Of a stretch of 38,617 nucleotides of DNA, positions 2,327-29,442 are shown in pieces. The position numbers were made by a program, and so were the translations under genes. Numbering within the stretch: position 1 is the stretch's first letter; each line of letters begins with the position of its first letter. Source of the stretch: Parasitella parasitica NRRL 2501 (lineage: Eukaryota > Fungi > Mucoromycota); the NCBI GenBank assembly GCA_025201805.1, contig MU619404.1:13476-52092 (forward strand). Reading direction: 5' to 3'. The notes beneath the pieces were generated by a model that saw only the letters and a program-made list of their open reading frames with translations, did no database searches and was not told the origin of the DNA.

Positions 2327-5300
2327 ATGGCCAAGGTAAAAAGAGACAATGAATACACTAATAAAGCGTATTAAGCTGGATTACAGAAAGTATTAGGCAA
2401 GAAAGGAGAGAAAAAGGTTATCAAAGCAAATCGTCCTGTAAAGGCAGATTGGAAGGAAGGCGTTAAAAAGAAGCAAGTGGGCGTATCTGATATGACATTG
2501 CTCACAAAAATTACAAACGAAGCAATCAATGAAAACTTGCAAAAGAGATGGCAAAATGCCGAGATTTATGTGAGTTGTAACGTTGTCTTGCTTTCCTTAT
2601 GAGCTAATCTTTACAATTGTTAGACTTATATCGGCCATGTACTCATTAGTGTAAATCCCTTCCGAGATTTAGGTATCTACACAGACAACGTTTTGGCTAG
2701 TTATCGAGGAAAGAATTTATTAGAGGTAAGATGGACAAAGAAGAAAGGCACATATACTTACGCTACATTTAGATGCCTCCTCATGTTTTTGCTATAGCTG
2801 AATCTTCTTATCGTCATATGAACAGTTACAAGGAGAATCAATGTATTATCATCAGTGGTGAATCGGGTGCTGGTAAGACTGAAGCAGCCAAGAGAATCAT
2901 GCAATATATTGCTGCCGTATCTGGCGACGGACAGAACTCCTCTATTAAAGAAATTAAGGAAATGGTCTTGGCAACAAATCCCTTGTTAGAAAGTTTTGGC
3001 TGTGCAAAGACACTTCGAAACGACAACTCTAGCCGACATGGTAAATATCTAGAGATTCAATTCAACTCGCAAGGTGAGCCTGTGGGTGCTGTGATTACAA
3101 ACTACTTGTTGGAGAAGGTGAGTTGCAGCATGTAAAAACGTAAATTTACAGTGTGTAACCAGCTCTATTTAGACCCGTGTTGTCGGTCAAATTGATAATG
3201 AAAGAAATTTTCATATCTTTTATCAGCTAACGAAGGCAGCACCTCCTGAATATCAACGTGAGTTTTTCTTTGTCTGCCTTGGTACATGTCGCCTAACTTT
3301 TTTATGCAGAATCATATGGTCTTCAGGGCCCTGAAAGCTTTTTGTATACTAGCAAAAGTGGTTGTTTGGACGTCCCAGGTATCAATGATGCAAATGATTT
3401 TCAAGCAACTTTGGTAAGTCAATGCAGGGGAGAGTATGCGGATGCAATCCATTAATACCGTCCATCCCATTATAGAATGCTATGGGTGTCATTGGATTAG
3501 AAAAGCACGAACAAGATGAAATCTTCAAGATGCTGGCAATCATTCTCTGGCTGGGTAACGTCGTCTTTGTTGAAGACGATAGTGGCAATGCGGCCATTTC
3601 AGATGGAGATGGTAATGTTCAACGATAATAATGACAATTCTGCACAGTCTCACAAATATTGAATGCATAGTGGCCAACTTCATTGCGTACTTGATGGAAG
3701 TGGATAGCGAGTCATTATCAAAAGCGCTCACAAGCCGTATCATGGAAACCCAGCGTGGAGGTAGACGAGGCAGTGTATACGAAGTACCACTCAATGTAGT
3801 CCAAGCAATATCTGTGCGGGACGCACTTTCAAAAACAATCTACGAGCGTTTGTTTGAATGGATTGTAACTCGAGTCAATATATCGTTGCAGGCACGTAGC
3901 GCTCATCAATACACTGTGGGTGTCCTCGACATTTACGGTTTTGAAATTTTTGAAGAAAACAGTTTTGAGCAATTATGTATCAACTATGTCAATGAAAAGC
4001 TGCAGCAGATCTTCATTGAGCTGACGCTCAAGGCTGAACAGGAAGAATACGTACGGGAGCAAATACAATGGACTCCCATCAAGTTTTTCAACAACAAGGT
4101 GGTGTGTGATCTGATCGAAGAAAAGCGCCCTCCAGGATTGTTTGCTGCCCTCAATGACGCTTGCGCTACAGCCCATGCTGATTCTAGCGCTGCTGATAAT
4201 TCTTTTGTGCAGCGCTTGGGCTTCTTGTCCAGCAATCCTCATTTTGAATCGAGAGGCTCCAAGTTTTTGATCCGCCATTATGCTGGTGATGTATTGTACA
4301 ACGTGGAAGGAATGACAGATAGAAATAAGGACTCCTTGCTTAAGGATTTGTTGAATTTGGCAACCGGCTCATCCAACCAATTCATTGCAAATACCTTGTT
4401 CCCTGAACGTATTGACCCCAATTCCAAGAAAAGGCCTCCCACTGCTGGTGACAAGATCAAGGCTTCCTGCAACACGCTTGTCACAAAGTTGATGCAATGC
4501 CATCCTAGTTATATCCGTACCATCAAATCCAATGACAATCGAAGCCCTTCCGAATATGATGAAAAGAGAGTGCTGCATCAAGTTCAATATCTTGGTTTAT
4601 GTGAAAACATCCGTGTCCGTAGAGCTGGTTTTGCTTATAGAACAGTAAGTTGTGTTTGCGTATTGAGATCATGTGGTATTCAATCCAGTATTATCTACTA
4701 GACTTTTGATAAGTTTATGGAGCGATTCTATTTACTATGCCCTACTACAGGCTACGCTGGTGAGTACATCTGGGGTAGAGATGCTATGAGTGGAACGTTG
4801 GAAATTCTCAAGCATAACAACATCGCCGCCGAAGAATGGCAAATGGGTACCACCAAAGTATTTATCCGCCATCCCGAAACTGTAAGTACATGCTTGCATG
4901 CTCAGGAGCAGATACTCACAAGATTCGTTTGCTATTACACAGATTTTTGCATTAGAAACTCTTCGAGACAGGTACTGGCACAACATGGCCACCCGCATTC
5001 AACGTGCATGGAGGGCCTACGTGCGATACAAGATTGAATGCGCTAGGAAGATTCAAAGATTTTGGAGACAAAACAAGTACAACATCGGGTACCTTCAAAT
5101 GCGCGAATATGGCCATCAAATCTTAGGCGGTCAGAAAGAAAGACGCAGATACTCGCTTGTAAGTATGAGACGATTTACTGGAGATTACATGGACATCAAG
5201 ACAGGCTCTGGGTTATCCACTATGATCAGAAACGCTGTGAGTCTTAAAGGCAACGAAGATGTTGTATTTAGTATGCGCGGCAGCACACTTGTTTCGAGAG

Positions 5301-6712
5301 CGATGAGATCCAGTGTCCCCAGCCCAAGAACTTTTGTATTAACAAACCAAAGCTTGCATATTGTCATGGCTACTAAAAACGGGAAAGTGCTGAGCATGAT
5401 AGATGAAAAGGTTATTAGTTTGAATATCATAAGCGGCATTAGCGTGTCGTCGCTTCAAGATGATTGGGTCGTTTTGCATTTAGATGGCTCGCCTGATGGC
5501 GACACTATCTTATCCTGTACCTTCAAGACTGAATTATTAGCCCACATGCTGCAGCAGACGGGTGGCAGAATCAAGGTCTTGGTTGCACCCCAAATTCAGT
5601 ACAAAAAGAAGGGAAATAAGGCTGTTACAATGAAGTTTGTAAAGGATGAAACTGCCAAGGGCGATGGCATTTACAAGAGCCACGTTGTCAAGATTTGCTC
5701 TGGTGCCCCAGCTAATAGTCGTAAGTTGTAACTCGACCTATTAGTGTCTCATCTAACATGGTAATATATTAGAATCTGCCCCTCCTTGTGCTAGAAAACC
5801 TCCTCAGTTAAGTACCAGGTCTACATCAGCCCCTCGTAAGAAAGCCAATCCGGTCCGCAGTGCTCCTCGGCCTACTGCTCCTGCTACTGCTGCTACTGCT
5901 GCCAATAATCGACCTGTCGCCAACAATATAGGTCGTTCTGCTCCACCTCCGCCTGCCCCACCAGTAGCAGCAAACAATGCTCCTCTGCCTCCCCATCCAC
6001 CACCTCCACCTGCCCCATCTTCACCTTTATACAAAGCCATTTATCCTTTTGCATCTCAAGAGGCTGGTGAAATCGCTTTTGAAAAGGGCGATATATTGGA
6101 AATTGTCGAAAAAGATGAAAATGGGTGGTGGTTGGCTCGCAAAGATAGCATTGAAGGATGGGTTCCCAGTAATTATCTGGAAGAATATGTTCCTCCTGTT
6201 GCTCGCTCAACTCCTCCACCTCCGCCTCCGCCTGCTAGAAGAGCCCCTCCTTCTGTGCCCACACCAAATAATGCAAGAGTCCCATCTCAACCACAACAGC
6301 CACAAACCTCAAACGTGCCTGCTTGGAAGCAAGAATTAGATGCCCGTAAAGCTGGTGGTGTTGGCCCGCTTTCAGCCAATACTCCTGTACCAGCTGCTAG
6401 AAAGCCGGCTCCTGCTCCTGGGCCTAAACCAGTAGTGCCTGCTAAGCCTAGTATACCTGGTAAACCAGTGGTCCCATCTAGACCTAGCGCTAATGGCCCT
6501 ACACCTGCTCCTCGTGCTCCTCCTCGTCCTGGTGGATCCAATGGCACACCACCTTCTAATGCTGCGGCTTCTTTGGCCGATGCGGTATGTTCTACTACCG
6601 TTTCATGTAAATAGTGTGCTAATAGCTCTTTTTTATTTATTTATCTATATAGCTTCGTGCTCGTAGACAACAAGCTCCTTCACAGCATGACGACGACGAT
6701 GATGAATGGTAA
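2327..6712 (+). CDS. MYO1: Type I myosin (motor, IQ, TH1, SH3, Pro-rich region, acidic DDEW tail), multi-exon
   Basis: P-loop GESGAGKT, switch motifs NDNSSRHGK and LDIYGFE, TEDS site GRRGSVY, IQ motif IQRAWR, SH3 ([14 protein letters not shown]), and C-terminal HDDDDDEW* (Arp2/3-activating acidic motif). ATG at 2327 followed by GCC AAG|GT; stop TAA at 6710-6712. Confidence 0.97.
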
Positions 6713-7030: not shown

Positions 7031-7263
7031 TTACTTTATTCTCTTCTTGAAAGCATTCGCTTTATAAATGGCTAATGGCACTTCATCTTCCTTTTCCTTT
7101 TGTGAGATGACAATCTTCTCAGTTATATTCTCTTGTTCATCGTCGCTATTCTCGTCGTCATCCTCTTCGTCATCATCGTCTGACGTAGAACTATCACTGC
7201 CTTGTTGTGGTTTATGATACATTTGCGTCTTTTTTTTATTGCCTAGCGTGGGTTTCTTTTTGA

Positions 7264-7302
<39 letters not shown>

Positions 7303-9280
7303 GCTGCTCTTGTTGTTTTCGCTGTTTGGGATTCAAGTAATTGTCCGGTACAACGAATCCAGTTGATTCGGCGGGACGAGGATTTGACATGAACATGGAA
7401 GTGTTTCCTTTTTGATTGCTAGCATTTGGATTGTTTGATCGTTTTTTCGATGATTGCTGCTGCTGCTGCTGCTGGCTTTGTGGTTGTTGAGGGGCAGGTC
7501 TTTGCTTCTTGACCAATCGTTTTCTAGGTATCTTTTTTTTAGGCTGCTCTTCTATTGGTATGTCATACGCTGCTGAATACGGTGCATTGGTAGCAATCAC
7601 AGACAAATACCAAAACATCTGGTTGGAGATCAGCACTTGTTCATGTAAGGGTCTTCTTGGATTGGCGAGCTTGACATGCGACATTTTATAAATGTTTCTC
7701 TCTACATGCAGCGGTAAACGTGTCATATGCATGCGATTGAGTTGGAAATCTTTGGGTGCTTTTTTAGGATCGTCAGCAAGGAAATCAAAAGTGGAGGTAT
7801 ATGAGCCATTGTTAAGGTTGTTGGCTTTTGATTTCCTGGAAAACAACGACGAGAGTGTAAATCTTTTAGCAATGCTTGTCGTAGTTGCAGTCGCTGCAGT
7901 AGTGGTGGTGGAGCTATCATTTGATTTCTCATCTTCTATTAATGGTGTAATGCTTGTCGCCGTGCTCAGGGTAGCCGTAGAAGCAGAAGCATTAGGTTCG
8001 ATTTTATTGTTCTTTTTGGAAGATTTCTCATCAGACCAAAATGCCCATGACCATGCACTTTTTCGGCCTTGATTAGATGATGGTGTCGATGTTGAAACGG
8101 ATCTAGCCAAAACGACTGGTGCTGGTGGTGACAATGACGATGAAGACGTTCCCTTCTTTTTATCTCTAGTGGCTATACATAAATCCCTCACTTCCTCATT
8201 TTCCACAACTGGTGAAAGCAGCGCTGAAGACTCTTGTTCCAGAACAGCAGATCCCTCTTTTCCATTCATGGCATCTGATAATATTACTCCTTCGGCTGAT
8301 GTCGATCGAACGATACTGCTCTTTTCAAGACGCTCAGAAGAATCCATACAATCAGATTCACTTTTTCGATTTCTTTGAGGTCCATTGACGGACGAATTTC
8401 GCTTAAAGTTAGTGCGAGCACCTCTTCTAAGCAATGGTCGATCTCCTTTAGGCACCAGTGCTCTGGATTCATCCAACGGTGATGAGTTTCTGTCGAAAAC
8501 CAAAAGGTCTGGCACATTTCTAGCATAGCCTACAAGTAGCACACATTATGAATACAGCACACAATGGCCAACCCCAATGAACCTACCTCCTGTAGTTGGT
8601 AGATGCAAACTCACGCTTCTTCGAAGTGCTATTTTTCGTTTTTTAGTGTCTTCTACTTCCTGGTCTTTTCCCTCTGTGGTATCTTTCTGTTTATGGGGTT
8701 TGCTCTCCAAAGCGTCTAGAGCTGCGTGGCGATCCTTCGCAGCTTCAACTGTATCGCATTCCTCCATGAGTTTCTGTTGATCGCTTGCCGTGAAATAAAC
8801 AGACAACACAGATTGTCTACGCTTCGTGCTCTTTTTTCGTACAATGAGACCATGCGTATCTACATACTTTTCAAATTCTGCTGGTGCAATTTCTGGATGC
8901 TGAGAAGCAGGTACCCTGTTTTGTTACAAAAAAAGGGTCAACAACACTGTATAGAGGAAGCATGTTTTACTCCTTTTGTGAAGTTTTTTACCCATTTACC
9001 AAAATAAGTGAGAAGGATTTGCTGTAGGAATATTAATTACTTCTGTACGTATACTTTCTTCGTCTGTGGATTTATTTAGCTGCCTTGGTAAAGAGAGCGC
9101 TCGAGTCAGGCCTGTTGTTTTTGATTCAGAATCTGATGTCGCTTGCTGTTGGGTATCTTTGGGTGGCTGCTGCTCACTTCTGTCCTCTTCGTCGATAGCA
9201 GTTGGCTTGGAGAGAAAATCCCAATCATCTTTACTCGATACATTTATTTCTGGCAATGCAGTGTTCGGCAGTTGATCCAT
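7031..9280 (-). CDS. ZDS1: Zds1-family protein (PP2A-Cdc55 regulator, Zds_C domain), 3 exons
   Basis: N-terminal motif NPSHLFW|VPASQHPEIAPAEFEKY spans an intron. C-terminal RLPLHVERNIYKMSHVKLANPRRPLHEQVLISNQMFWYL matches the Zds C-terminal domain. PolyQ and acidic tail. Confidence 0.88.
7266..7299. repeat. (CTG)n/(CAG)n microsatellite encoding polyQ in the Zds1-like gene
   Basis: About 11 consecutive CTG units, with a second shorter run near 7456-7473. Confidence 0.9.
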
Positions 9281-9411
9281 TGTGTCTTTCGTATATTTCT
9301 TAAGAAGAAGAAAAAAAGAAATTAAGGAGATGTATACTGTAGCTTAATATATATAGTTATGCAAAATTATTAAGGGGGAGGGTCAAGTGGGGCAATCGCT
9401 GGAGAGACCTA

Positions 9412-9514
<103 letters not shown>

Positions 9515-12500
9515 TGGAGTTTAATAAGCCTTGACAACAACAATAATTGTCTAAAGAAACCTAAATGAATGAACAGTGACGAACTAAAAATCAATGATTG
9601 CCCCCACCAAACCTACAAAAAACTATTCTTAGGTGTGGTTACATTCGTGTTACAAGTATTTTCTTTATTCGTATTGATGACAGGAGGATAGATACGGGTT
9701 TCAAATGTTTAAAATAATTGGAATTACATGACACTGCAACTTTAAAATCTGTAATATCCATGTAGACAGCAGCACTAAGAAATTATCAGAAGAACGAGGC
9801 AGATACAGATTGCAAAAAAAACTTGACATGTTCCAAAGCAAACTTGTTCTATTATTTATGAAAAGTAAAACAGAAGTTTAATCGTGTTCCTCAAACCGAG
9901 ATGAACAGCGCATCGAAAGTGACACGGCCCAGCAAATCTGTAGCTCCTTTTCCACAACATACTTATTTATTGTACTAAATGTTGGTATGTTACCAATTAA
10001 TTTCAAAACATAAAAGGTAACAGCTGCATATCTAGCATGTTTACTAGTCATATTACATCATATTTCCTTTCCTTTCAAAATAATAAACTGCAGCGTATGA
10101 TTATAATTGAAAAAACAAAAATGATTAAAAGAAAGGACGCTAAGAGAAGGAATTAGTATCCAAACCCAGTTTCTTTTTCTTTGTTTCTTTAGCTTTACTT
10201 GTTCTGGGTGTATCAGAGGTGCTGGTTTTGTGTGACATTTGGCATAGTCACCGATCAGCACAGAGATGCAGCATAATTACGATTTTATCAGCTTTTGGAA
10301 AGGGGTCCAAACAACGGGAATTTGGTTAGAGAATTGAACTAATGTCAATAAAAAATTTCTATCAAGCTATGATGGTAATTTTTATCAAGACATTTTAAAT
10401 ATTACTGGCAATTCATAAAATTATACATTTCCCGTGAAAATTAAGAAAATACATCACTTTTCAAATATGGGACTATTCTAAAATGAGGCTCATCTACATT
10501 TAAAAAAACATATTCACAGGCTTGGTACTAATTGTGAGCCACCTTAAGAATTACGCACCTCTCTATATCTATTGGAGACCGATTTAATGCATACCACAAA
10601 TGTGATTATCTTTATATAGCGAAAAAATTGGAAGTATCACATCCTGTATCGGCTTTAGGGATTAAAGCTTGGTTCGGTGAGCAATGTATAAACAATGGTT
10701 GATTGAAAGCTTTTGTAGCTAGAAGTGCTTGCAACTTACCACTTACACAAATAATCCTCTGCTTAAAAATATAAAAATCAGCCAGAAAATGCATCAGCAT
10801 AGGTAAATTTCATGAAAAGTAGTTAATTTAAACACTGCGTCCCAAAATGCTATGAAACTTGATTGGAACCTGTTGGAAATTGACAATAGAAGATGATGAA
10901 GGATGCTCTTTTCCTTAAAAAGATCTACTTGACTCTCAAAAGAGCTGCAACCGGCTATGGTAAAATATTGTTTAAGAAAGTATCTATGGGTTTCCTGAGA
11001 ATATGCTAGCAAAATATCTTCGTGTAAGATTTCATTGCTTGAATATGTAGAAAGCATATGCATACCATATATAAGATCATGAATAAAATACGATGGTAAT
11101 ACACAAACGTGCGTTATTCTATAACGCATGTTTGTCCTTATGCATTTTATAGGAAAAATCATACTATGGCCCATCATCTACTATTAAGAAATAAATCTCA
11201 AAACGCTTTTACTGGGATCGATAACAACACATTATGTAGCAACAAAATATACATAATCGTAATGAAATGATAACTTCATTGCCATATCATTATATATCCT
11301 CTGTGTTGAAATCTATGCCATGCTTTGATGTTTTACTCCTCACATGAGTTTATGCGAATTTGATATCGGGTAATAGGATTGATGATGATCAATAATTAGT
11401 GTTATGTCAAAAGTCTGATTAAATAAATCTGTCAAAGAATTACACTTTTATTCAGAATACATCTCTCGATGTATTATATACACATTCATTACACTAAGGT
11501 TCTACTGCCTAATTGCATAATGTAAATCATGAGTACCATTATTTACTGTAAGAACCTGGGACTGATGTTAGACCCTGATGTGAGACCTTGCCATGTTATT
11601 TATATAACAATTAGGATGCAATCCTTCCAATTTCAAGCTTCATCAACATCAGTAAATTATCATACTAACAAATATTTTAGCATACATCCTAGTAAAAATA
11701 TCTTACCAGCCAAAAAAGGTAAAATATATCACGTGACAAAAAATTGCAAAATCCGACACCAAAAACGTGAACGTATTTTTTGCAGATAACTTTTGATAGA
11801 GACATCGTCCAGTGGAGACCAAGTTATGCTCAGATAGCGATGATTATGCCTGACTTGATGGCGCATAAGACAGGCTTTGATTTGCTCTTTATCACAGCCT
11901 ATCATTGATTATATGCAATTCTGATATGTTAATTTGTGATATCATCTAATAATTTTATAGATGTCAATAAAAATATGAAAGCCAATGTTGTTGCAAGATA
12001 GCGCCAAGTCAACGCCAAGTTTTCCAAGTTTGATCTCGGTGTTACAAATGCTCTTGTTGTTGAACTTTGAAGAAATGTTGAATTTTCCAACATAGCTTTT
12101 GATGACGAGTAGTGACAGCAATAGAAAACTGGGTAACACCCTATTTTCCATAAATCATATTTCTTCTTTAGGTTCCCCCCAATCTCTTTGTGCCCTGCAG
12201 GATTATAATTCTTGTAATTTTTATTTAAGCTTTTCACTTCTCTATTTTTTTTTTATTGGTTTGCGACGTACGTTGGCTTTCCGACTTTGAATAATATGTA
12301 TTCTATATTTTTTTTTCGAAGTTATTTCGAGGCCGAACCTGAAAAGATCGTAATAATATACTTTAGAAGCATGAAACATAGCATATATATGAAGTATCCT
12401 ACAGTATATTATTAGTTTTATGGAAATCGGAATGTTTGATTGAGTCGGATTTGACATATCGTATCGGCACCGACATGGTGTGGTTTTACCGTTATTTCTG

Positions 12501-12533: not shown

Positions 12534-13435
12534 TCACTGCAGATCTTCTATTTCCTTTTGAAGTGCTTTGATTTCTGTTTCTTTCTTGACGACTTCATCT
12601 ATAGCTTTTTTTAAAGCCGCTATGGAGTGATTATACATGTTATCAAATTGATTGATTATTAAGCTTGTAGGTGACATGTTAGCTAATAAAATGTTGCTAA
12701 TGCAAAATACTAGCTGTTGAGATATTCATAAAATTCGAAACTAAAGAGTCGGTCATACCTAGATTGGTCTAATAATTTGTATGGAGAGTTTGACATGAAA
12801 TTTTTATATCCAAGTGTACTTTCAGCCATGTTGGAGATTTCGATCGGCAGTTTCGTATCTGGGGATTTCATGTCCCAAAAAGCAAACTCGTAAGTTTGTG
12901 TTGATTTGTCAGTGAGCTCATTAAGCTTCGATGCTATGATTGCAAAGCAACCATGTGGTATATTTTTAGAGTATGATTGCATCCATAATTCATCTCGTAG
13001 CGAAATCGATACACTTGTTTGTCTTCTAAACTTGAAATAGCCTACTATTGATGAGAGGTCTTTTTGTTGCGTCTGGACAAGGTTCTTGTTGATGTTTCCT
13101 TGGTCGTCGTATGGTTTTTCTTTTAGTATCTGGAACCCATGGATAACTAAATACGTTTTAGTAAGTTAGCAAGAGTTGTATGAACACCAATCACAAGCTT
13201 ACTGATAAAATCTTCTCGTTTTTCATACGCTTGCTCAGAGGAATCATCGTTTGTTAGCGTTGATTTGTAAGACAAAACACCTAAAAAGAAGCCTTCCTAG
13301 TACGTCAAAGGATGGTTGTTAATAAACGCAGAGTGGGCTTGCTAAAATTACACACACAATGTCAGTCTGTGAATTTGCACACTCGTAAAGTAAGGACGAT
13401 AACGCAGTTCCGCCTATACGAACAGAATAGGCCAT
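12534..13435 (-). CDS. Abraxas/ABRO1 (FAM175) family MPN- scaffold protein of the BRISC/BRCA1-A deubiquitinase complexes; ~229 aa, 4 exons (13435-13358, 13296-13203, 13146-12759, 12663-12534)
   Basis: Spliced translation MAYSVRIGGTALSSLLYECANSQTDI|EGFFLGVLSYKSTLTNDDS...KPYDDQGNIN...IVGYFKFRRQTSVSISLRDELW...KSTQTYEFAFW...LPIEISNMAES...QFDNMYNHSIAALKKAIDEVVKKETEIKALQKEIEDLQ*. This matches recalled Abraxas motifs (SANSNADHEGFLLG, VIGWYRFRRNT..MSYRE, STHxLE, C-terminal coiled coil). Intron phases sum to one intact frame of 690 nt. The last acceptor is AAG, preceded by a GCTAAC branch site. Confidence 0.88.
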
Positions 13436-13588: not shown

Positions 13589-15052
13589 TCATGTCTCAAC
13601 TTTAAGCTTCTTGGATGTAGGAGCATGCTCAGCATAAGAATATGTTCTCTTTTCTCCTCCTCCTCCTCCTCCTCCTCCATTAGATTCAGGCCGCACACTC
13701 AGAGGCGACGAACGATAATCCCTTGCGTTGGATGGCCAGTGAAATGCACCTGGATTTGTGGGTGTGGCAGAAAAATTCAGAGGGCTAGGCAGCTCGTTTT
13801 GTTGATAGAATTCAGGATAGAAAGTGGACGGTGAGGGCAGGTTTTGAGCAAATTGAGACGGTAATGCGGAAGGTGGGCCGACAGCAGTGGCAGCAGAGCG
13901 ATTCGATTGCAACTACAAAGAAACGTTATTATTGTACAATTTAAAACCATTATATTATTTTTACCTGCTGTTGCTGCTGTTGCTGCTGTTGCTGCTGTTG
14001 CTGCTGTTGCTGCTGTTGCTGTAGTTCCTGTGATTGCTGCTGTTGCTGCTGTTGCTGTGGTTGCTGTGGTTGCTGTTGTTGCTGTGGCTGTCGAGGTTGT
14101 TGCTGGGAGCTTTGGTCAGCATGGTAATTGGTTGGTTCAGGGCTTTCATTTGGAATTTGTACTCGAAGATTTGGTCTTTTTGCTGCATCATTTTTACCGT
14201 CGAATTCAGAAGAAGGAGAGGAGATGGGCATAGAAGGAGGAGGCATAGAGTTTTCTTTCGTTGATAAATGATGCAGAGGTGCAGGCTGAACATACATTGG
14301 CTGAGGTGGAGAGGGATAAGTCATTGCGTTGTGTCCTTGGATGACAACTTGTTGCGGCGGAGGAGGAAGCGGAGCATACATTATCGGCCGTTGATGTTGA
14401 GGATGTTGCTGTGGTGCATAGTTTGGCTATGCACCTTAAATGTGAGTGAATTTTACCATCGGATCAAATCAGTGTCTTACCATATTATAGACTGGATACA
14501 TTTCATAAGGTGGCATTTGGCGGTGGGCCATATTTGGATCTGCTGTTGAAGTATGATAGTCCATTACCGGCGCAGCATTCGGCTGATACTGTTGAGATTG
14601 AACAATTTGATATGAATCCCTTTCGTCCGCATCAGATAAATCGTGAGAGTTATCATCATCGCCTTTCTCGCTTGCATTGATAAACTAGGAAAGGGTTAGC
14701 TGAAAAGCATTATGCAGAGCAAATAAAACAAAGGCACATACATCATCATTGGATTTACTTTCATATGGTTCATCGTACTAAAATAGATCTTTAGTTGATA
14801 AAATGGATAAACGGCTACATCATTTTACACACTAACCTCCGTGTATCTCATCAACACTTTATCAATGTCATTGCTAGCGTATTGAACAAGCTTGTTGTTT
14901 GAGTTGTTTAGGATGATTAATGCAATTTCACAGTTGCAGAGAACACTCAGTTCGTAGGCTTTCTTCATAAGGCCATGCTTTCTCTTTAAAAATGTAACCT
15001 GTCTGTTACGGTCATCTGTAATAGGTTGGATTCTGATCTTTTTGCGTCCCAT
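13589..15052 (-). CDS. MEF2-type MADS-box transcription factor (Rlm1/RlmA-like), multi-exon, polyQ
   Basis: [47 protein letters not shown]...[18 protein letters not shown] is a MADS+MEF2 domain. Downstream RPNLRVQIP docking motif and [31 protein letters not shown] motif typical of fungal Rlm1. Confidence 0.93.
13966..14103. repeat. (GTTGCT)n hexamer array encoding CAG/CAA polyQ in the MADS gene
   Basis: Near-perfect GTTGCT repeats at 13966-14021, degenerate continuation to ~14103. Confidence 0.9.
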
Positions 15053-15296
15053 GGTTTGTTATTAAGGATGAGGGTATATCTACAAAAATAATTAGCAATT
15101 GTCCCCCCAAGACTATATATACATCTACCTTTGGTTTTATGTTGNNNNNNNNNNNNNNNNNNNNNNNNNNNNNNNNNNNNNNNNNNNNNNNNNNNNNGGA
15201 AATAGTAACAACGTTATAAATAGTAACGGTCTAATGTATATACATGCTTTATTGGTCGTCTATTTTTAGCTCAAGGCATGCACTTGTTAGGACATG

Positions 15297-16223
15297 TTAC
15301 GACAGGTTGAGGCGATTCAAATCAGACATGATGATGGCTCCAGCAGTAGCCACATTGAGTGATTCAACCGACGAATCCATTGGAAGAGATACTCGCAATT
15401 CCTTGGCGAGCGCATTGTCCACGCCATGGTGTTCTGAACTAAGAATTAATGCCATCTTCTTGATTGGCAATGACTTTGGTTGATTCCAAAACCATACTCC
15501 TGTTCCTGGTAATGGTGTGGAGTGATTTTCTGGCGACCAAATCTCAGCATTTCGTCTTTTTGATGGCAACATGTCTGCTACAATGGGTGTAAATCCATGC
15601 TTTTTCAATTGAGCCAGTAGCTTGTGCGCAGGAATAGCAACATGGGGCCAAGTTAGAGTCAAGCCTCTACTTGCCCGAACGCATTTATCATTGAGCAGAT
15701 CACATGAGTGATGCGTGATTAAGCCTGATTGCCATCCTAATGCCTTTGCTGTTCTTACAAGTGTGCCTATGTTTCCGGGATCAGATATTTTATCAAGCAC
15801 CAAGATGTGATCATTATCGAAAATCTTTGGGTCATCTTCACTGTATTGAGGGACTATGGCTTCCGCAAAGACTTCATGATTACCAGGCTTAGAAGCCGTG
15901 CCTAATATCCGTCTTGCCAAATTGATATCGCTCGCATAGTAGTTTTGAGCTGGGAACTGCTCTGGATGTTGAATTACTTGCAGAGCGGGGGATTTAATGT
16001 CTGTTTCTGCCTCTAGTTCTTTCTTGGCGGTCACTATCAATGATTTGAACTTGATGCCTTGGTCGCGCAATTCCTTCAAGGTTTTGTAGCCTTGCACTAC
16101 GACAGTGCCCTGGTCCAGTCTGTATTGCTTCTTTTCTCTTAGGGCAATAAAGTGCTTTGCGTGAATAATTTGTTGGCTTTTGAGTCGATAGAACAGGCGT
16201 GGTAATTGATATGTGCTGGACAT
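15297..16223 (-). CDS. SpoU/TrmH-family (SPOUT) RNA 2'-O-methyltransferase, MRM3-like, intronless, 308 aa
   Basis: SPOUT motif 1 LDKISDPGNIGTLVRTA, motif 2 LILSSEHHGV, motif 3 LPMDSSVESLNVATAGAI. Confidence 0.9.
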   Translation of the reverse strand: MSSTYQLPRLFYRLKSQQIIHAKHFIALREKKQYRLDQGTVVVQGYKTLKELRDQGIKFKSLIVTAKKELEAETDIKSPALQVIQHPEQFPAQNYYASDINLARRILGTASKPGNHEVFAEAIVPQYSEDDPKIFDNDHILVLDKISDPGNIGTLVRTAKALGWQSGLITHHSCDLLNDKCVRASRGLTLTWPHVAIPAHKLLAQLKKHGFTPIVADMLPSKRRNAEIWSPENHSTPLPGTGVWFWNQPKSLPIKKMALILSSEHHGVDNALAKELRVSLPMDSSVESLNVATAGAIIMSDLNRLNLS

Positions 16224-17520
16224 GAGGGAGGCGCTCTTTTATGTATATATATATTATTATTCAAGGAGTACAGTAAGAAACAACGTTGACGGAAAGTTCA
16301 AAAAGCAAATTTTTTACCTGGTTGTTTTTGGGATTCAAATTCATTTGGTTTGCCGTAATGTAACCCTGTTGCTGTCAAATGCTAATGCTACCTGTCCTTG
16401 TCCTGTGAGACGACACACACTGCATCTCGACATGTATTTGAAGATATCTATGAGCTCTTGTAATCATAGATTGATTGGTATCGAGACAATTTTTTTTGTA
16501 TGTGTCGAGGGCAGTTTTTCCCTCCTGTAAACAAGTTTTTACGGGTAACTCCTTTCTTTGCCATATTATCATTAAACATCACTCTTTGCCGTCAGCCCTG
16601 TCTTTTCGCCAAATCACACATAGCAATTGACGCAAACACTAATCTATTTTCATTGAATTAGTAGCACGTTGTGGAATAAAGTTTACAAAACGTTTCATTG
16701 GCAACAATTAACCCAGTTGCTGTACAATATTGCTCAATTCAATATATAACACGCTGAAATTTCCATGTGGACACTGCAGCGGCAAGTAAAAGAACACGTG
16801 TGAGCTGTAATTCTTGTTGTGCAGTAGAGCCTCATTATCATGCAAAGATTTGTAAGGTTGACTACTTGGGCTTTGGGCTGTTGTTTATTTTGATGTATGC
16901 TTGCATTTGCGTGAGAAGTGTTTGTACTCTGCATACGTACTGCAACGTGGTACCTTGCTATTACTTCAACAGATATATTATATAACATACTGTACATAAC
17001 ACAACAATAGCGTGGAAATGGAACGACCACTTGACATTTGGTCGACGGAAGCGCCAAGTGATGGTAGGGTTACCTCCTTGCTTTCAAAGAATTTCTTTCA
17101 AGTCTACAGATAAACACAGTAACTCTGATTTATATCAAAGCTACTTTATCATTTAAGGTTTTTCACAAAAAGTGTGCCAAACATGTTATAACTTCCTATT
17201 ATTACTATCTTGATACAGGGATTAATTTTAGTGCATTACGCAAAAGAATATTCGGCTCAGCATTTATTTACGCTGTATTTAATGTAGTCATCCCTTACAC
17301 AACAAACAAAATGATACAAATGGAGCTAGAAGAATAACATTGAATGTTGTTTTCTCGACTGAAACATGAATTCGCGGATATCAAGTACATTTGCAAGACC
17401 AGCAAACTTACTCTGGCTTGAAAAACAGTCGTTTTGTGTGGCTTTACTTGGCATTAAAAAGCAAATAAGAGCTCTGGTAGTTATTTAGCAAGAAAGCTTG
17501 TCAAAAGTACATTAATCGCC

Positions 17521-18786
17521 ATGGCAGGGCCAGAATCCAGCGAACTTGAAATACCTTTCTATGATATACCGCCGACTTACAAAGAATTTTTAAAGAACCA
17601 TCTCATCCCTAATAAGCCTTGTATCATAGGCCCTCGTTTTACTAGTTCCTGGAAAGCAAACAAAGAATGGATTGTGCCAACAACTGACAGTGCCGTGGAC
17701 AACAAGACACTAGCACCGGCATATAAACCCAATTATGATTATTTATGTCAGCAATATGGTACTGCTCAGGGTCTAGTTGCGCGGTGCGATAGGCGCTACT
17801 TTACAGATCAAGAACGCATAGAAATGTCCTTTGCTGATTTCTGTAAAAAATGGGAGCAGGATGACGGGAAACCTTCTCAGGATTATCTTAAAGATTTACA
17901 TTTGCAAAAAATCTTTCCTGGTGAAGAGTTCTATGGTGTGTCAGACTTATTTGAAGGTTTGTCTGAATCCATTTATTGATACATGACATTTGCACGTCTT
18001 AAGTAAGATCTATTTGTAGATGATTGGCTTAATGAATACTGGCTTCAGCAAAAAGAACGAGACGACTACAGATTTGCTTATTTTGGTGGCCATACAACAT
18101 TTACACCATTTCATGCTGATGTCTACAGATCTTATTCTTGGTCCAGCAACATTTGTGGCATAAAGAAGTGGACCTTATTTCCACCTGGACAAGAAGATTT
18201 ATACAAAGACAAATTCGGCAACTCTGTGTACGATGTGCGAGATGTGGATCCTACACAATTTACAAAGTTTGATCAAGCTAGAAAAATAGAAATATACCAG
18301 AAAGATGGCGAAACTGTTTTTGTTCCTTCAAATTGGTTTCATCAAGTCGAAAATATAGGCGCTGCTATTTCAATCAATCACAATTGGATTAATGCAAGTA
18401 ATATTATGTTGACGTATGAATCTCTGCGAAAGGACTGGAATGATTGCAAGCATGCTATTAACGATTTGGAGGATATTTTATCACCTGTGGAATTTTTACA
18501 GTCATCCCAGAGACTATTACTAGCACATAGCGGTTGGGATTGGCAGATATTCTTGAATATGATGGCACATGTGGTGGCAAACAGAATTAAAGAGCCAAAT
18601 GTGCCTGAGCATCAACCTGATTTAGTATGGCAAATAGATCGTATAAAAGACGTCTTGAAGCAGTGGGAAAGCGATGAATCTCAATTACTAGACTATTTTA
18701 AAGATAACAATTTAATTGGAGTTTATTCACAACTTTGTTCCAACATAGACATCATCAAACAGAAGTTTGCAATTTCAAAAGCATAA
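17521..18786 (+). CDS. JMJD4: JmjC 2-oxoglutarate/Fe(II) oxygenase, JMJD4-like, 2 exons (intron ~17957-18019)
   Basis: YLKDLHL, DDYRFAYFGG..TFTPFHADVYRSYSWSSNICGIKKW and FVPSNWFHQVEN..ISINHNWIN, with an intact HxD...H triad. Confidence 0.92.
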
Positions 18787-19108: not shown

Positions 19109-20281
19109 ATGACGAAAAAACTAAGACCTTCACATACAAGTCAAGCGAGTGGAAGTTCCACAATCGGGTCTAATGAGATCCACTTGTCAACAAGAACAAG
19201 GAAATCAATTAGCAAGTCAAGACGTTCATCTGCTGTTGAAGAAAATCCATCGTCTAGGAGAACCAGTGTAGCTGCTGCCCTGAGCTTATTATCTTTGCCT
19301 TCTTTTAATGAGCAATTGAACGTTGCTCAGGTCTCGGATGCACTCGACGTCCATGCTATGTACAAGATTAAAATCAGCAGATCGCATCAAAAACTGGAAT
19401 ACTTTTTCGGTGAACCAACGCCTGTTGATGTTTGCATCAGGGAAATCGACAAGGAGGGTCTCAAAGCTATGCTTGAATCCAAAGTCCCTTTGTGCTATTT
19501 TCTGTATCATTTGTTGAATGAATATAGCTCTGAAAATTTGGTAAGAGAAACATGACCGCGGTCATATATGTCTTTCTCTAACAAATCAACAAAATAGTTT
19601 TTCTTCTTAGAAGTCGAGCAATTTGAGAATCATATAAAGAAATCATCAAAGAAACACAAAGAAATAGCTCAGCGTATTTACGATACCTACATGTCAAGCA
19701 ATTCGTATTTAGAAATCAATCTGGATGATAGAGTCAAGCGAAGCATTGTAGATCAAATGAATGCTAACAATGATGGGATCTACAGTCGCATATTTAGTGA
19801 GGCTCAAGCATCTGTCTATGTTTTACTAGAATCAAGCTTTGTGCGATTCGTACACACATCCACTTATCACGATATGGTAGACACTTGTGGTCGATTGAAC
19901 ATATATTATGATGATGCGACTACAAGCATTGCTTTAAATTACTTGACTCAGTATCTCCGTGATCAGCACGATATAGGCCTGATGTACAGCTCAGATCATA
20001 GTCCTTTAGGCAATAGTCTGAAGGATATGAATAGGCAACATCACAGATTGACAAAGGCTATACTGAGGGGATTTATCGAGGACTTGTTTGATGTAGATTA
20101 CTTTAGCTTAATTTCGTCATCTGCTTCATCTGCTTCATCTGCTTCATCTGCTTCATCTGCTTCGTCTGTTTCATCTGCGTCTTCTTGTTCCTCAACAAAA
20201 TCATTGCATCCACCATCGACAATCAAAAGAATCCACAGAAAGAAGGTGGCTGCTTGTAGAAAGCTGTCGACTCATTTGTAA
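19109..20281 (+). CDS. RGS (regulator of G-protein signalling) domain protein, 2 exons (intron 19541-19597)
   Basis: YFLYHLLNEYSSENL|FFFLEVEQF...AQRIYDTYMSSNSYLEINLD...IFSEAQASVYVLLE.SFVRF follows the RGS fold consensus. Ser-rich tail encoded by (TCATCTGCT)n. Confidence 0.9.
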
Positions 20282-20358
20282 ATATGATCAATAAAGTATA
20301 CCCTCTTGAGAAAATGCTTTACTTATGTTTAACAAGTTGTATACAATGTACAATATAA

Positions 20359-20360
<2 letters not shown>

Positions 20361-20414
<54 letters not shown>
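20361..20414. repeat. 54-bp poly(dT) tract between the convergent RGS and CDC50 3' ends
   Basis: Uninterrupted T run. Confidence 0.9.
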
Positions 20415-20520
20415 CAAAAGATTGGTACGAAAAAAAGGATAAGGTATCCATTTTATACTGATGGTTTATTAATTGAATAAAGAAATGAACGAGTTACATG
20501 TATGAAAAAAGAGAGAGACC

Positions 20521-21981
20521 TTATGGGCCGGAGCCAGGGGTTTGCTGCCAAGAAAGACGATCGTGATCTCCAAGTTTTCTGCAGTATTACAGTCAGTAAA
20601 AAAACGGTTCATCAGTCTAATTATATAGTTACCTTGGCTTGAAAAAGTGCCAACCCAAGAATACAACACCCAAAAAGGTACAAACACACCCCATCACGAT
20701 CCAAGCTAAACCCATGAAAGGATTTCTATCACCCAAAAATGATGTGCCAGTGAGTACAATGGATTTCGTACCTCCATAAGCAGTTATATCGTAATCTAGG
20801 TTGAAAAGGTCAATAAATGCTATACGCCAATGCCTGCTACTATACATACTTAATGTAACATTGACCTCATAGGTTCCTGCTTGAAGGGTTCCTTCTCTCA
20901 GAGCAGAATAGAGCTTTCTAAATGTAGGATACCAGCTGGTTCTCATCCAAACCTGGAAATGCTCATCATCCTGTGGGTGGAACATTTCCTCTGCTGAATA
21001 TCCCCTGGGATATTTCTTTTGCCAATTTGGCGGAGGAGCAAGTTCTGCAAGGTTCATTGTAGTGGTTGCAAGTCTCTTCTTATCTGCCGGCCACGCAATG
21101 TCCCTCTCACTGAAATTCATAGGATAACTTGCTGCGTTTCCAGGAGGATTCACGAATGTAACAGCAAATGTATCTAATAAAGTCAAGTTTAATCATATAT
21201 CACTTTGCCCCCCCCCCTTATTATGTGCTGCTTGCTTACCGTTGAACATAGAGTTGGCAATCAACCCGCAAGGATAATAGATTTTGTTGTCTGGACTGAT
21301 AGCTACAGGCGAACATGAGCTGAGTGCATCGGTCGCTGTGATCACATCCCCATGAAGTTGGTTGTAGCTGAGACTTTTGACATATTTACGATGGTTCTGA
21401 TAGAAATTGGTGAGTCGGTAGTAGAGAAAAACGGGCGTTTTCAAGTCGATGGGCACAGTAAATCGAATAGCACAAACACCAGCATCTCCAGCGACAGCGT
21501 TAGGGACAAATCGAACAGTGGGTGCATACATTTCTACGAGAGATGTTTCATTTTAGGAATGTTTAAAAGTTTGCATGATATCTTCTTACGTCCAGATCCT
21601 TCAGCTGTAAATTTGTATGAATATGAGCTTGGGTCCAAAGGGGTAGGAGTTGAGTTTGCATTCAAACAGTTGGTATAATCGATAATAACCTCGTTTACCT
21701 ATAGATAGTAGCAGACTGAGCATATCGTGTAGAAGAAAAAAAGTGTACTAGAAACTATTTACTGTATCGCTTTCATATAAAAACAGACCACCAAGTGGAG
21801 CAAAGATGATACCGGCGACAAAAAGTGTAGGAAGGACAGTTTTAGGTGTTAGTAATGGTTGCCAAGCCTTGAGACGCTGCTGCTTGAAGGCAGTATCTAC
21901 AAGCAAATGTTATTTATCAAGTCCTTTTTTCGTTTTTGCGCAGTATTTACTAGCAGGCTTTCTGCTCTTTTCTTCAGACAT
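20521..21981 (-). CDS. CDC50: CDC50/LEM3 family P4-ATPase (flippase) beta subunit, multi-exon
   Basis: [79 protein letters not shown]-terminal TM then KPRKLGD; stop at 20521-20523. Confidence 0.95.
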
Positions 21982-24962: not shown

Positions 24963-27492
24963 TTATTTTTTCATAATTTTTTGAACATGCTCGACAAATG
25001 TGGGGGCAATTCTCGGGATAATTTCAAGCTGAGGCGGCCGAAGTGTCATTTCATGAGCGACTAGACTGCTGCTGCTACCGCTTGTGATAGATTGCTCGTC
25101 ATCACTGTCGTAGTCAATCTCGGCCATATCATTAAAGACGCCCATCACCTCTTTGTTTTCAGGTAAAAAGTCAAATATCTCTTGAGAGTCCGCTACATCG
25201 GTCGTAGACATTAATTTTTGACGCTTTCGCTCCAAATGTCTTTCCTTGCGGCTGCGGTGGTAGGCGCATAGTTGGTCAATCTCGTTTCTTAACGCAGGAT
25301 ATTCAGACGAAGGGATGCCAGCTTGTGCGACAATTTGATCAAGATCAATCTTGGTGGGAATACCGTTCGACACAAAGCTAAAAAGTTTATCCACATAACC
25401 TAGAAGGTTATCAAATAGTTTAGATTGGTCTTGGGCGTGCACGTTGTGCACAAACTGGTAGAATCTGTCTTCATGGCGCTGAACAAGATCGATAAAAGGC
25501 TGCGCTGTGTTGGTGACATCTTGGACGTCCATTGCATCAATCACTTGGATCAAATCATTTATAAACGTAGCCACATGGCCAATAGTATCACCAATATTTG
25601 CAGCCTTGTAAACTTGGGCTAAAGGTTCGTAAAAGATAGCAAAAAGGTCTTTGATGATTTCTCCAGTGACGCCTTGGAACACAAGAGACATCAACACCTC
25701 TTGCTCTTGTTTTCTAGCATAGAGAACCCAGAGCTTGTATAGGTTTTCAACCAATACACGAGCTTCTATTTTACCAGGTTGGTTAGCAAAAGCAACCTTG
25801 ATGATTTGTTCAGGTGTCAATACAGGCTCAATATTAGAATTCTTCAAAAGTTCAAGAGTCTCTGTGATGGGAGTGGTCTTGCCCAACGTCACACCAGAAG
25901 GCAATTCAGTTTGAACAGCGTTGGCAATCTTTTGGCAAAGAGGAGGATCGCTGATCTTTGCTTCCAGATCCTGGATATCTTTGTTGAGCTCCTTCGATTG
26001 TTCGCTCATGTTTGTTAGCATGATTCTAACGTCTTTACGTGAGATCNNNNNNNNNNNNNNNNNNNNNNNNNAGTACGTAGATATGGTTTACCTTTGGAAA
26101 AGACTTTTACCACCAAAAGGCTGAGCCAAAAACAAATCCAAAACACCTTTTACCATGGAGAAGGGGTTTGATAGTTTCAATATTTGAGCAATGGTACGAT
26201 AAGGCATCAAAGAGTGAGTGCGCTTCAAATTGGCAACATTTTCAACGGACCTATCCGAGGTAACAAATTGGGTATGTAGAACAAAAGCAAAACTACAAAG
26301 CTTGGGCATGAGTTACACGGTTGCGCAAATGCGATGCGCAGACCTCTATTTTAGCCACTTACTTGATCCTACCCCATTCAATAGCGTTACGCAATTCGTG
26401 AGGCAGCTGGTCAATAGTCTCGGTTTTCTTGATTACTTCAAACACTTGCAAAAGGCCATTGGGTTCCATTATTTGCTTTTTAAGCATATTCAACAAACCG
26501 TCCAACTCAACAATTTTCTTATCCACTTCGGCGCGGAAGCGTCTTTCCTCATTGATGCGATTCTCATCCATCTTCAGACGCTCTGCGGCATCTTTTTGTT
26601 CGTCAGCAGACAGCTGGAAAGAGTCGTTCATCAGGAAATCCCTGAAAATGTCACTGTTTGCAACCTCTGTTTCAGCCGACAGACGGCGCAGAAAAGATCT
26701 CAACATAATGCGGTCCTTCTCGCGATGAAGATGCTGCGTCGCACTGTTGGTGTCATGCGCCTTGGATGGGATACTGGGCAGCTCGAGAGTCGGGAAAGCT
26801 TTCTTGAGATCATCACGAAGCTGGCGGAATTGGCCATGACGCCTGGCAACGTACACTGGTGGAACATCACCACCATCGGCCATAACCAAGTATGTTTCAA
26901 TAAGGAATTCCGTGTGTATATGTTGGCGAACGGTGCGCACTTCACTGACATCTCTTGTAGTTACAACATTCAATTTGAGGCCATTGCATCCCAGCCATTC
27001 CAGGCAACTCTCTTCGCTTTCGAGGCTTGTCAATTTGAGCCTGGACACCAGCTTTTCATCATCGTCTTGGCTGACTAGAGGCTCACCACCGGGCAAAAGG
27101 TTAATGCTTTCCTCGTTGCCTTGGACAGTCTTGATGCTAGCACAAAGAGAGATGATAAGCAGTTTTTGCACCTTATACCAGAGCACGCGTCTTTGGGAAT
27201 CTCTTGAACACTTGGGAGCATAGGTGTCCAATTTCAACTTGCTGTATTCATCTAAAAATGTCTGCAGTTTCTCGAAAAATCCCTTTTCATTTCCATCCCT
27301 CAGCAGTGGAAATTCAAGCACGAAATTCTGAGTCAAATACTGCAGAAATGGATAGTCTTTACTGGTTTCTGCAGTAGGCTTTACCAATGACGACAATTCA
27401 GTTGACCTTCTGATGCTGTTGATTTCACCTTCGAGCTGCTGAGAAATAAGCTCTCTTTTGAAATAATGCAATTGCTGAGGATTCAACTCCAT
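24963..27492 (-). CDS. PX-associated + PX + DUF3818 domain protein (YPR097W/Lec1-like), 3 exons; assembly gap at 26047-26071 lies in an intron
   Basis: N-terminal QLHYFKRELI..QL, PX core YVARRHGQFRQLRDDLKKAFPTLELPSIPSK, LHREKDRIMLRSFLRRL, LKRTHSLMPY...GVLDLFLAQPFGGKSLFQR, IIKDLFAIFYEPLAQVYKAANI. Confidence 0.88.
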
Positions 27493-27737
27493 TTTAAATT
27501 TATATGCAATAGATGAAGAAAAAGAGAGAAATGTTGTATTACTGATGTCCGTTTCTTTTTTTTTTTTTTTTTTTTTTTTTATTAAAAACGGAGTTTTTGT
27601 CTATAAGCTTCATATCAAACAAAACGAGATAAATATGTATACCAAAGGCTGATTTTTGTTATGTGGAACCCTTGTTCTTGGCAAACTGGTCAATTCAGAA
27701 TGACGTTTTTTTTTCTTTTTAATTATCACTTTGCCTA

Positions 27738-29442
<1,705 letters not shown>

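Follow-up and report, generated by a model that had tools for sequence, protein, structure and literature searches.

The list of open reading frames for the locus at 12534-13435 records a single 90-aa piece (12710-12982), and the question raised by this locus is whether the piece belongs to a longer, spliced gene and what such a gene would mean for a fungus. An earlier note on this DNA had read four short exons here as a hidden Abraxas/ABRO1 gene implying a K63 deubiquitinase system of the BRISC or BRCA1-A kind, and its remark that the list shows only the 90-aa fragment was borne out. To our knowledge, work on BRCC36 complexes has been confined almost entirely to animals and Arabidopsis, and the complexes are absent from yeasts. 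The DNA analysed, hereafter the window, is the whole 38,617-nucleotide stretch from Parasitella parasitica (Mucorales), and positions given without a prefix refer to it.

Gene model and Mucorales orthologues

The Abraxas/ABRO1-type gene is encoded on the minus strand of the window in four exons, which join into a frame devoid of internal stops:

exon 1, 13358..13435, minus strand: 26 codons, beginning with the ATG; encodes the first strand and the helix that open the MPN- domain
intron 1, 13297..13357, minus strand: 61 nt, GTGTGT..TAG, phase 0
exon 2, 13203..13296, minus strand: EGFFLG strand and "ABRAXAS finger"
intron 2, 13147..13202, minus strand: 56 nt, GTAAGC..TAG, phase 1
exon 3, 12759..13146, minus strand: core of the MPN- domain, with GYFKFRR replacing the JAMM HxH; STQTYEF; Asn163
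intron 3, 12697..12758, minus strand: 62 nt, GTATGA..TAG, phase 2; left unspliced in the partial public model
exon 4, 12534..12696, minus strand: linker and C-terminal coiled-coil helix, with the stop (12536-12534) immediately after

All three introns are bounded by GT..AG, and their phases (0, 1 and 2) are consistent. The motifs on which the earlier reading relied are present, with the EGFFLG codon at 13296, IVGYFKFRR with its G at 13042, STQTYEF at 12904 and a terminal coiled coil. Sequence searches of the Parasitella gene were run exon by exon, while public orthologues (A3, P0009) were used for full-length searches and folding. Exon 1 matched positions 2-20 of the Pfam profile PF21125 (E 0.035), and 18-22 of its 26 residues are identical to those of Mucorales orthologues. 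The position of intron 1 is common to Mucor circinelloides, which has the same donor, and to a locus from another Mucorales lineage (L032), which has a GTGAGT donor. Intron 2 is precisely missing from the M. circinelloides orthologue and is found in L032 at an identical position; the position of intron 3 is common to both.

Intron 3 offers two in-frame acceptors, yielding a protein of 240 or 229 aa. The 229-aa model, with its acceptor before 12663, was rejected: orthologues align gap-free to the 33 nt immediately upstream of that point, the splice position in M. circinelloides and L032 corresponds to 12697/12696, and the orthologous proteins run straight into the longer exon 4. The protein is therefore 240 aa long, so that the four exons and intact frame of the earlier reading were retained and its length of about 229 aa was not.

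Exon 3 alone scored 33.6 bits against PF21125 (cut-off 27, E 3.8e-8), and its substitutions relative to M. circinelloides (17/9/56 by codon position) fall mostly on third positions. This score and the third-position bias confirm, at the level of sequence, that the gene is real far beyond chance, and the same comparison indicates that it is under purifying selection relative to Mucor. It is present as a single copy in the genome. The description of the gene as hidden held for the open reading frame list but not for public annotation, where a partial model of 163 aa exists (BD408DRAFT_459869) that retains intron 3 and is 100% identical to exon 3.

The orthologue survey was made by word-based searches and covered Mucorales and a few further sequences. 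Orthologues of ~230-260 aa were found in Mucor, Rhizopus, Benjaminiella, Helicostylum, Cokeromyces, Sporodiniella and Cunninghamella; nearly all of the Mucorales orthologues are named "hypothetical", yet they carry the Pfam domain. Several irregularities were observed among the public models. That of M. circinelloides 1006PhL (P0010; L025:8001-8949) has a wrong C-terminus created by a spurious last intron, the genomic frame continuing through the coiled coil. The L032 locus (L032:6001-6800) has an extra intron after a FAFWDMK motif, and many public models are truncated at 128-155 aa because of this intron. In several Rhizopus models (P0028, Rhizopus arrhizus) the Abraxas orthologue is joined to a histone resembling H2A.Z; these fusions are probably mis-joined neighbours.

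Family assignment and scaffold residues

The assignment of the gene product to the Abraxas/ABRO1 (FAM175) family, as a predicted MPN- scaffold of the ABRO1/KIAA0157 type, is supported by Pfam, PDB and fold searches, all of which place Abraxas/ABRO1 first. A full-length orthologue scored 72.5 bits against PF21125, and the PDB matches of exon 3 are Abraxas, ABRO1 and KIAA0157. A profile built from 13 Mucorales orthologues aligned nearly end to end with ABRAXAS 9-253 and ABRO1 4-247 in a PDB search (E 1e-16 to 4e-9), and no other MPN protein was matched by this profile at E below 1. Foldseek with the predicted structure of an orthologue (pLDDT 61) returned Abraxas, ABRO1 or KIAA0157 for all of the top 10 (E 3e-14 to 3e-9). 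The coiled-coil helix that follows the MPN domain is present, spanning residues 198-246 in the orthologue model.

The alternative anticipated in the earlier note, a best match to another MPN- protein such as CSN6, Rpn8 or eIF3f, did not occur in the profile and fold searches. All that speaks for such a protein is the common MPN fold: the next family appears in the Foldseek list at E 2e-6, with Rpn11, Rpn8 and CSN5 far behind at ranks 12 and lower. The genes for eIF3f, eIF3h, Rpn8, Rpn11, CSN5 and Prp8 are separate loci in the genome and are not scored by the Mucorales profile (E > 1). An artefact of exon stitching is countered by junctions that are conserved or exactly absent in orthologues. 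On these comparisons, both forms of this alternative are considered already refuted. The pairs CSN5-CSN6 and Rpn11-Rpn8 resemble the proposed system in combining an active JAMM protease (MPN+) with an inactive MPN- partner, but they are encoded by separate genes in this genome and score much more weakly.

Two known scaffolds come closest. ABRO1 (KIAA0157/FAM175B, Abraxas 2), the scaffold of BRISC (insect BRCC36-KIAA0157, 5CW3; human BRISC, 6R8F and 6H3C), shares the MPN- domain and coiled coil over the aligned ABRO1 4-247, the Asn that supports the E-loop, the finger Asp and the absence of pSxxF, and it has BRCC36 and BRE as partners, both of which are encoded in this genome. The fungal protein differs in stopping right after the coiled coil, at 240 aa compared to more than 400, a length close to the trimmed constructs of 267-289 aa used for ABRO1-type structures. 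ABRAXAS1 (FAM175A), the BRCA1-A scaffold (6GVW, 9SMN), has the same core and scored slightly higher in the profile and fold searches (64 bits versus 59 for ABRO1); in contrast to it, the fungal protein lacks the RAP80-binding region, the pSxxF BRCT motif and a proline at the Pro137 column. Since ABRAXAS and ABRO1 are described as products of a duplication in vertebrates (PMC7692841), the fungal gene would be co-orthologous to both.

The zinc ligands of an active JAMM protease are missing, with GYFKFRR in place of GWYHSH and no HxH in any exon, in agreement with the inactive scaffold proposed earlier. The residues known to activate BRCC36 were located by alignment. Activation involves contact of BRCC36 Glu30 with ABRAXAS Asn170 or ABRO1 Asn164 (PMC6695476), activity is lost in an Asn177Arg mutant of the insect scaffold (PMC4579573), and Asn163 of the fungal protein (12832-12830) aligns with the human asparagines. 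Asp47 of the "ABRAXAS finger" pairs with BRCC36 Arg89 (PMC13462734); Asp44 of the fungal protein (13245-13243) lies 17 residues after Glu27, the EGF glutamate, which is the spacing of human ABRAXAS Asp47 after Glu30, and Asp43 and Asp44 are invariant in 12 aligned sequences. As judged from these alignments, both known BRCC36-activating residues, Asn163 and the finger Asp44, are kept.

The scaffold ends after the coiled coil, its alignment stopping at ABRAXAS 253, before the RAP80-binding region at ABRAXAS 277-287 (PMC6695476). No pSxxF BRCT-binding motif is found in the Parasitella scaffold, as had been stated earlier. An SxxF ending occurs in one of 20 related sequences, that of Sporodiniella umbellata (P0020), and is probably due to chance.

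BRCC36 and BRE in the Parasitella genome

The partner subunits were sought in the same genome. A single BRCC36 gene was found (G000:C3 304691-303493, minus strand, 6 exons, 296 aa), with the JAMM metal ligands and with an intron 2 that needs a GA-AG donor; a genome lacking BRCC36, which the earlier note named as refuting the complex, was thus not what was observed. The best match of its exons is BRCC36, with Asp88, Arg89, His122, His124 and Ser132 in register and Asp135 formed across a junction. The equivalents of Glu30 and Glu33 are presumably those of the motif STE-N-EE; a PDB search with the exon carrying this motif gave no alignment. The C-terminal helices scored just below the cut-off on PF18110, and a genome-wide search with that profile gave no match although BRCC36 is present; because of this miss, blank genome scans are treated here as weak negatives. 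A metagenome search for Mucorales BRCC36 loci returned nothing close, and the six distant loci obtained (L026-L031) were left out.

Intron 2 of BRCC36 (L013:2466-2524; G000:C3 304523-304465, minus strand) is 59 nt long, with a GA-AG boundary in an AG|GAA context. The boundary may be genuine and non-canonical, or it may reflect a lesion or an error of assembly, and BRCC36 would be truncated if the intron were left unspliced. The enzyme could accordingly be decaying in Parasitella, with the GA donor a splice-killing mutation and the scaffold an orphan, a scenario which the non-canonical donor and the lack of any GT donor yielding an intact frame would suit. We regard this scenario as highly improbable. 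Spliced GA-AG introns have been reported in just this AG|GAA context, mainly in animals (PMC7072748), the six exons are free of stops and frameshifts and retain the catalytic residues, and the scaffold is under purifying selection relative to Mucor.

BRE (BRCC45/BABAM2, PF06113) was likewise found, as one gene on the plus strand at about G000:C68 127364-128936 (L014:1865-3437); orthologues suggest an earlier start ATG than the one used in its public model, KAI8640662.1. Mammalian BRE has a UEV-RWD-UEV architecture (PMC6695476), and in Mucorales the BRE proteins align to BRE over two regions that are not contiguous. A predicted structure of moderate confidence (pLDDT 65, 8 sequences) for the BRE protein of Spinellus was used as a stand-in for that of Parasitella. 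Its residues 6-126 superpose on BRE 8-131 (Z 10.4, rmsd 3.6) and residues 167-317 on BRE 259-380 (Z 10.8, rmsd 3.5); the 40 residues that link the two UEVs are low-confidence in the model and 15% hydrophobic. The idea that the C-terminal UEV is absent, considered at first, was wrong, as the superposition placed the gap at the central RWD. Across 8 Mucorales sequences the linker measures 40-200 aa, is 15-32% hydrophobic and low in complexity, and is poorly conserved.

The predicted architecture of Mucorales BRE therefore differs from that of mammals: both terminal UEVs are kept and the central RWD (about 132-258) is replaced by a linker, which is well supported for the short-linker species. In Parasitella the linker is 137 aa, about the length of an RWD domain, and we infer that the RWD is lost there as well. 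A search of the genome revealed no RWD encoded as a piece of its own, which is a weak negative. The missing part holds the elbow ubiquitin site (Arg137/Phe140), and a motif search of 9 Mucorales BRE sequences gave no SPRW-like wrist motif. Both ubiquitin sites, which have been called conserved across eukaryotes (PMC13462734), thus appear to be lost in Mucorales, the wrist site as judged by the motif search. The RWD-less Mucorales BRE is a new observation of this analysis.

Candidate complex, evolutionary setting and neighbourhood

The genome encodes a scaffold that is free of zinc ligands and keeps the MPN- domain and coiled coil, together with one BRCC36 and one BRE. The best reading, and in our judgement a likely one, is that these subunits form a core deubiquitinase for K63 chains whose arm has degenerated. 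By analogy with solved homologues, the scaffold would pair with BRCC36 via the MPN domains and coiled coils, and two such heterodimers would form a super-dimer in which Asn163 props the BRCC36 E-loop and the finger Asp44 contacts the counterpart of BRCC36 Arg89 in trans, and K63-chain cleavage would thereby be turned on. BRE would dock through its N-terminal UEV. More speculatively, exchange of the rigid RWD middle for a flexible linker could leave a tethered arm with a weaker preference for long chains. Arm mutations in human BRCA1-A cost only 2- to 4-fold (PMC13462734), so the core should remain active. The fuller proposal is that Mucorales possess a naturally reduced BRISC, i.e. a super-dimer with both activating residues and a BRE devoid of the RWD and of both arm ubiquitin sites, which would cleave K63 chains but have no arm of the kind described for BRCA1-A, where it provides avidity and feeds in the chain; the case for this proposal is about evenly balanced.

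It is unlikely that the complex is instead an ordinary four-subunit BRISC, in which MERIT40 is present, BRE, though diverged, still forms the canonical arc, and the whole functions as in animals. Such a complex would account for the retained C-terminal UEV of BRE, which holds MERIT40 in animals (PMC6695476), and BABAM1 has been tabulated for a chytrid (PMC3969565). Generic VWA profiles (PF13519, PF04056 and PF00092) applied to the genome matched one Rpn10-like, one Ssl1 and one midasin-like gene and no MERIT40; a MERIT40 gene would fit the reduced core equally. The two SHMT genes in the genome, which might be taken as a further point in its favor, are uninformative because SHMT is universal. 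Against the canonical arc, a 40-aa linker of the Spinellus composition cannot fold into an RWD of ~125 residues, and linker length varies five-fold. A nuclear DNA-repair complex similar to BRCA1-A, relying on a fungal counterpart of RAP80 and on a protein that resembles BRCA1/BARD1, is less probable still. It draws on plant BRCC36A, which is reported to function in the repair of DNA crosslinks and to show epistasis to BRCA1 (PMC3017590). The Parasitella scaffold, however, ends short of the RAP80-binding region and lacks a pSxxF tail, and hence would not be a BRCA1-trapping protein of the BRCA1-A type; the RWD of BRE that sandwiches RAP80 is missing; the RAP80 UIM profile PF18282 had no match in the genome, a weak negative for the gene; and BRCT scans of the genome, which give lower bounds, revealed no BRCA1. 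The complex may nevertheless serve repair in a way that does not involve BRCA1 binding.

The earlier note suggested that the fungus may keep a minimal ancestral core, a suggestion that was not supported. Plants, insects and vertebrates have the subunits, and Mucorales BRE lacks a domain of the solved mammalian protein. Lineage-specific reduction fits better because the RWD missing from Mucorales BRE is present in mammalian BRE and RWD-containing BRE is treated as ancestral in the literature; by this sequence comparison, the short form is probably derived rather than ancestral.

Our literature search found no paper on a BRCC36 complex in Mucorales and no fungal study, in keeping with the earlier statement that functional work in fungi is lacking, and the main review names plants, insects and vertebrates with fungi unmentioned (PMC7692841). 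The novelty was nevertheless overstated: a 2026 paper states that ABRO1 occurs in all eukaryotes (PMC13462734), and a supplementary table of 2014 already listed orthologues of BRCC3 and BABAM1 from the chytrid Batrachochytrium (PMC3969565). The occurrence of the family outside animals is not new, and the gene is a further member, belonging to a BRISC variant marked by a short scaffold and an RWD-less BRE. Presence in an early-diverging fungus was to be expected and is partly on record, which limits the surprise. The compact Mucorales version would provide a microbial genetic system for studying the complex without RAP80 or interferon signalling. The RWD-less BRE amounts to a natural deletion that tests the need of the rigid arm and ubiquitin sites for long-chain preference and, if the reading is true, provides a natural test of the BRCA1-A arm model in a genetically tractable fungus (Mucor).

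Parasitella and Mucor have the same gene order, JmjC, SpoU, MADS-box, Abraxas, whereas a DEAH helicase that comes next in Mucor is not adjacent in Parasitella. The annotated neighbours in the window are as follows:

13672-18735: JmjC/cupin gene, SpoU methylase and Q-rich MADS-box gene, upstream of the Abraxas gene and syntenic with Mucor
3631-5731, 7031-8542, 19691-21186 and 24963-29130: Pfam matches to class I myosin, Zds_C, RGS (weak), CDC50, PX/DUF3818 and protein kinase

Only ~240 nt separate the end of the MADS match from the Abraxas ATG, and part of this spacer is conserved, with a stretch of 66%. A long A-rich run was also observed in the window at 9385-9515 and may represent either a poly(A) remnant or an artefact of the assembly.
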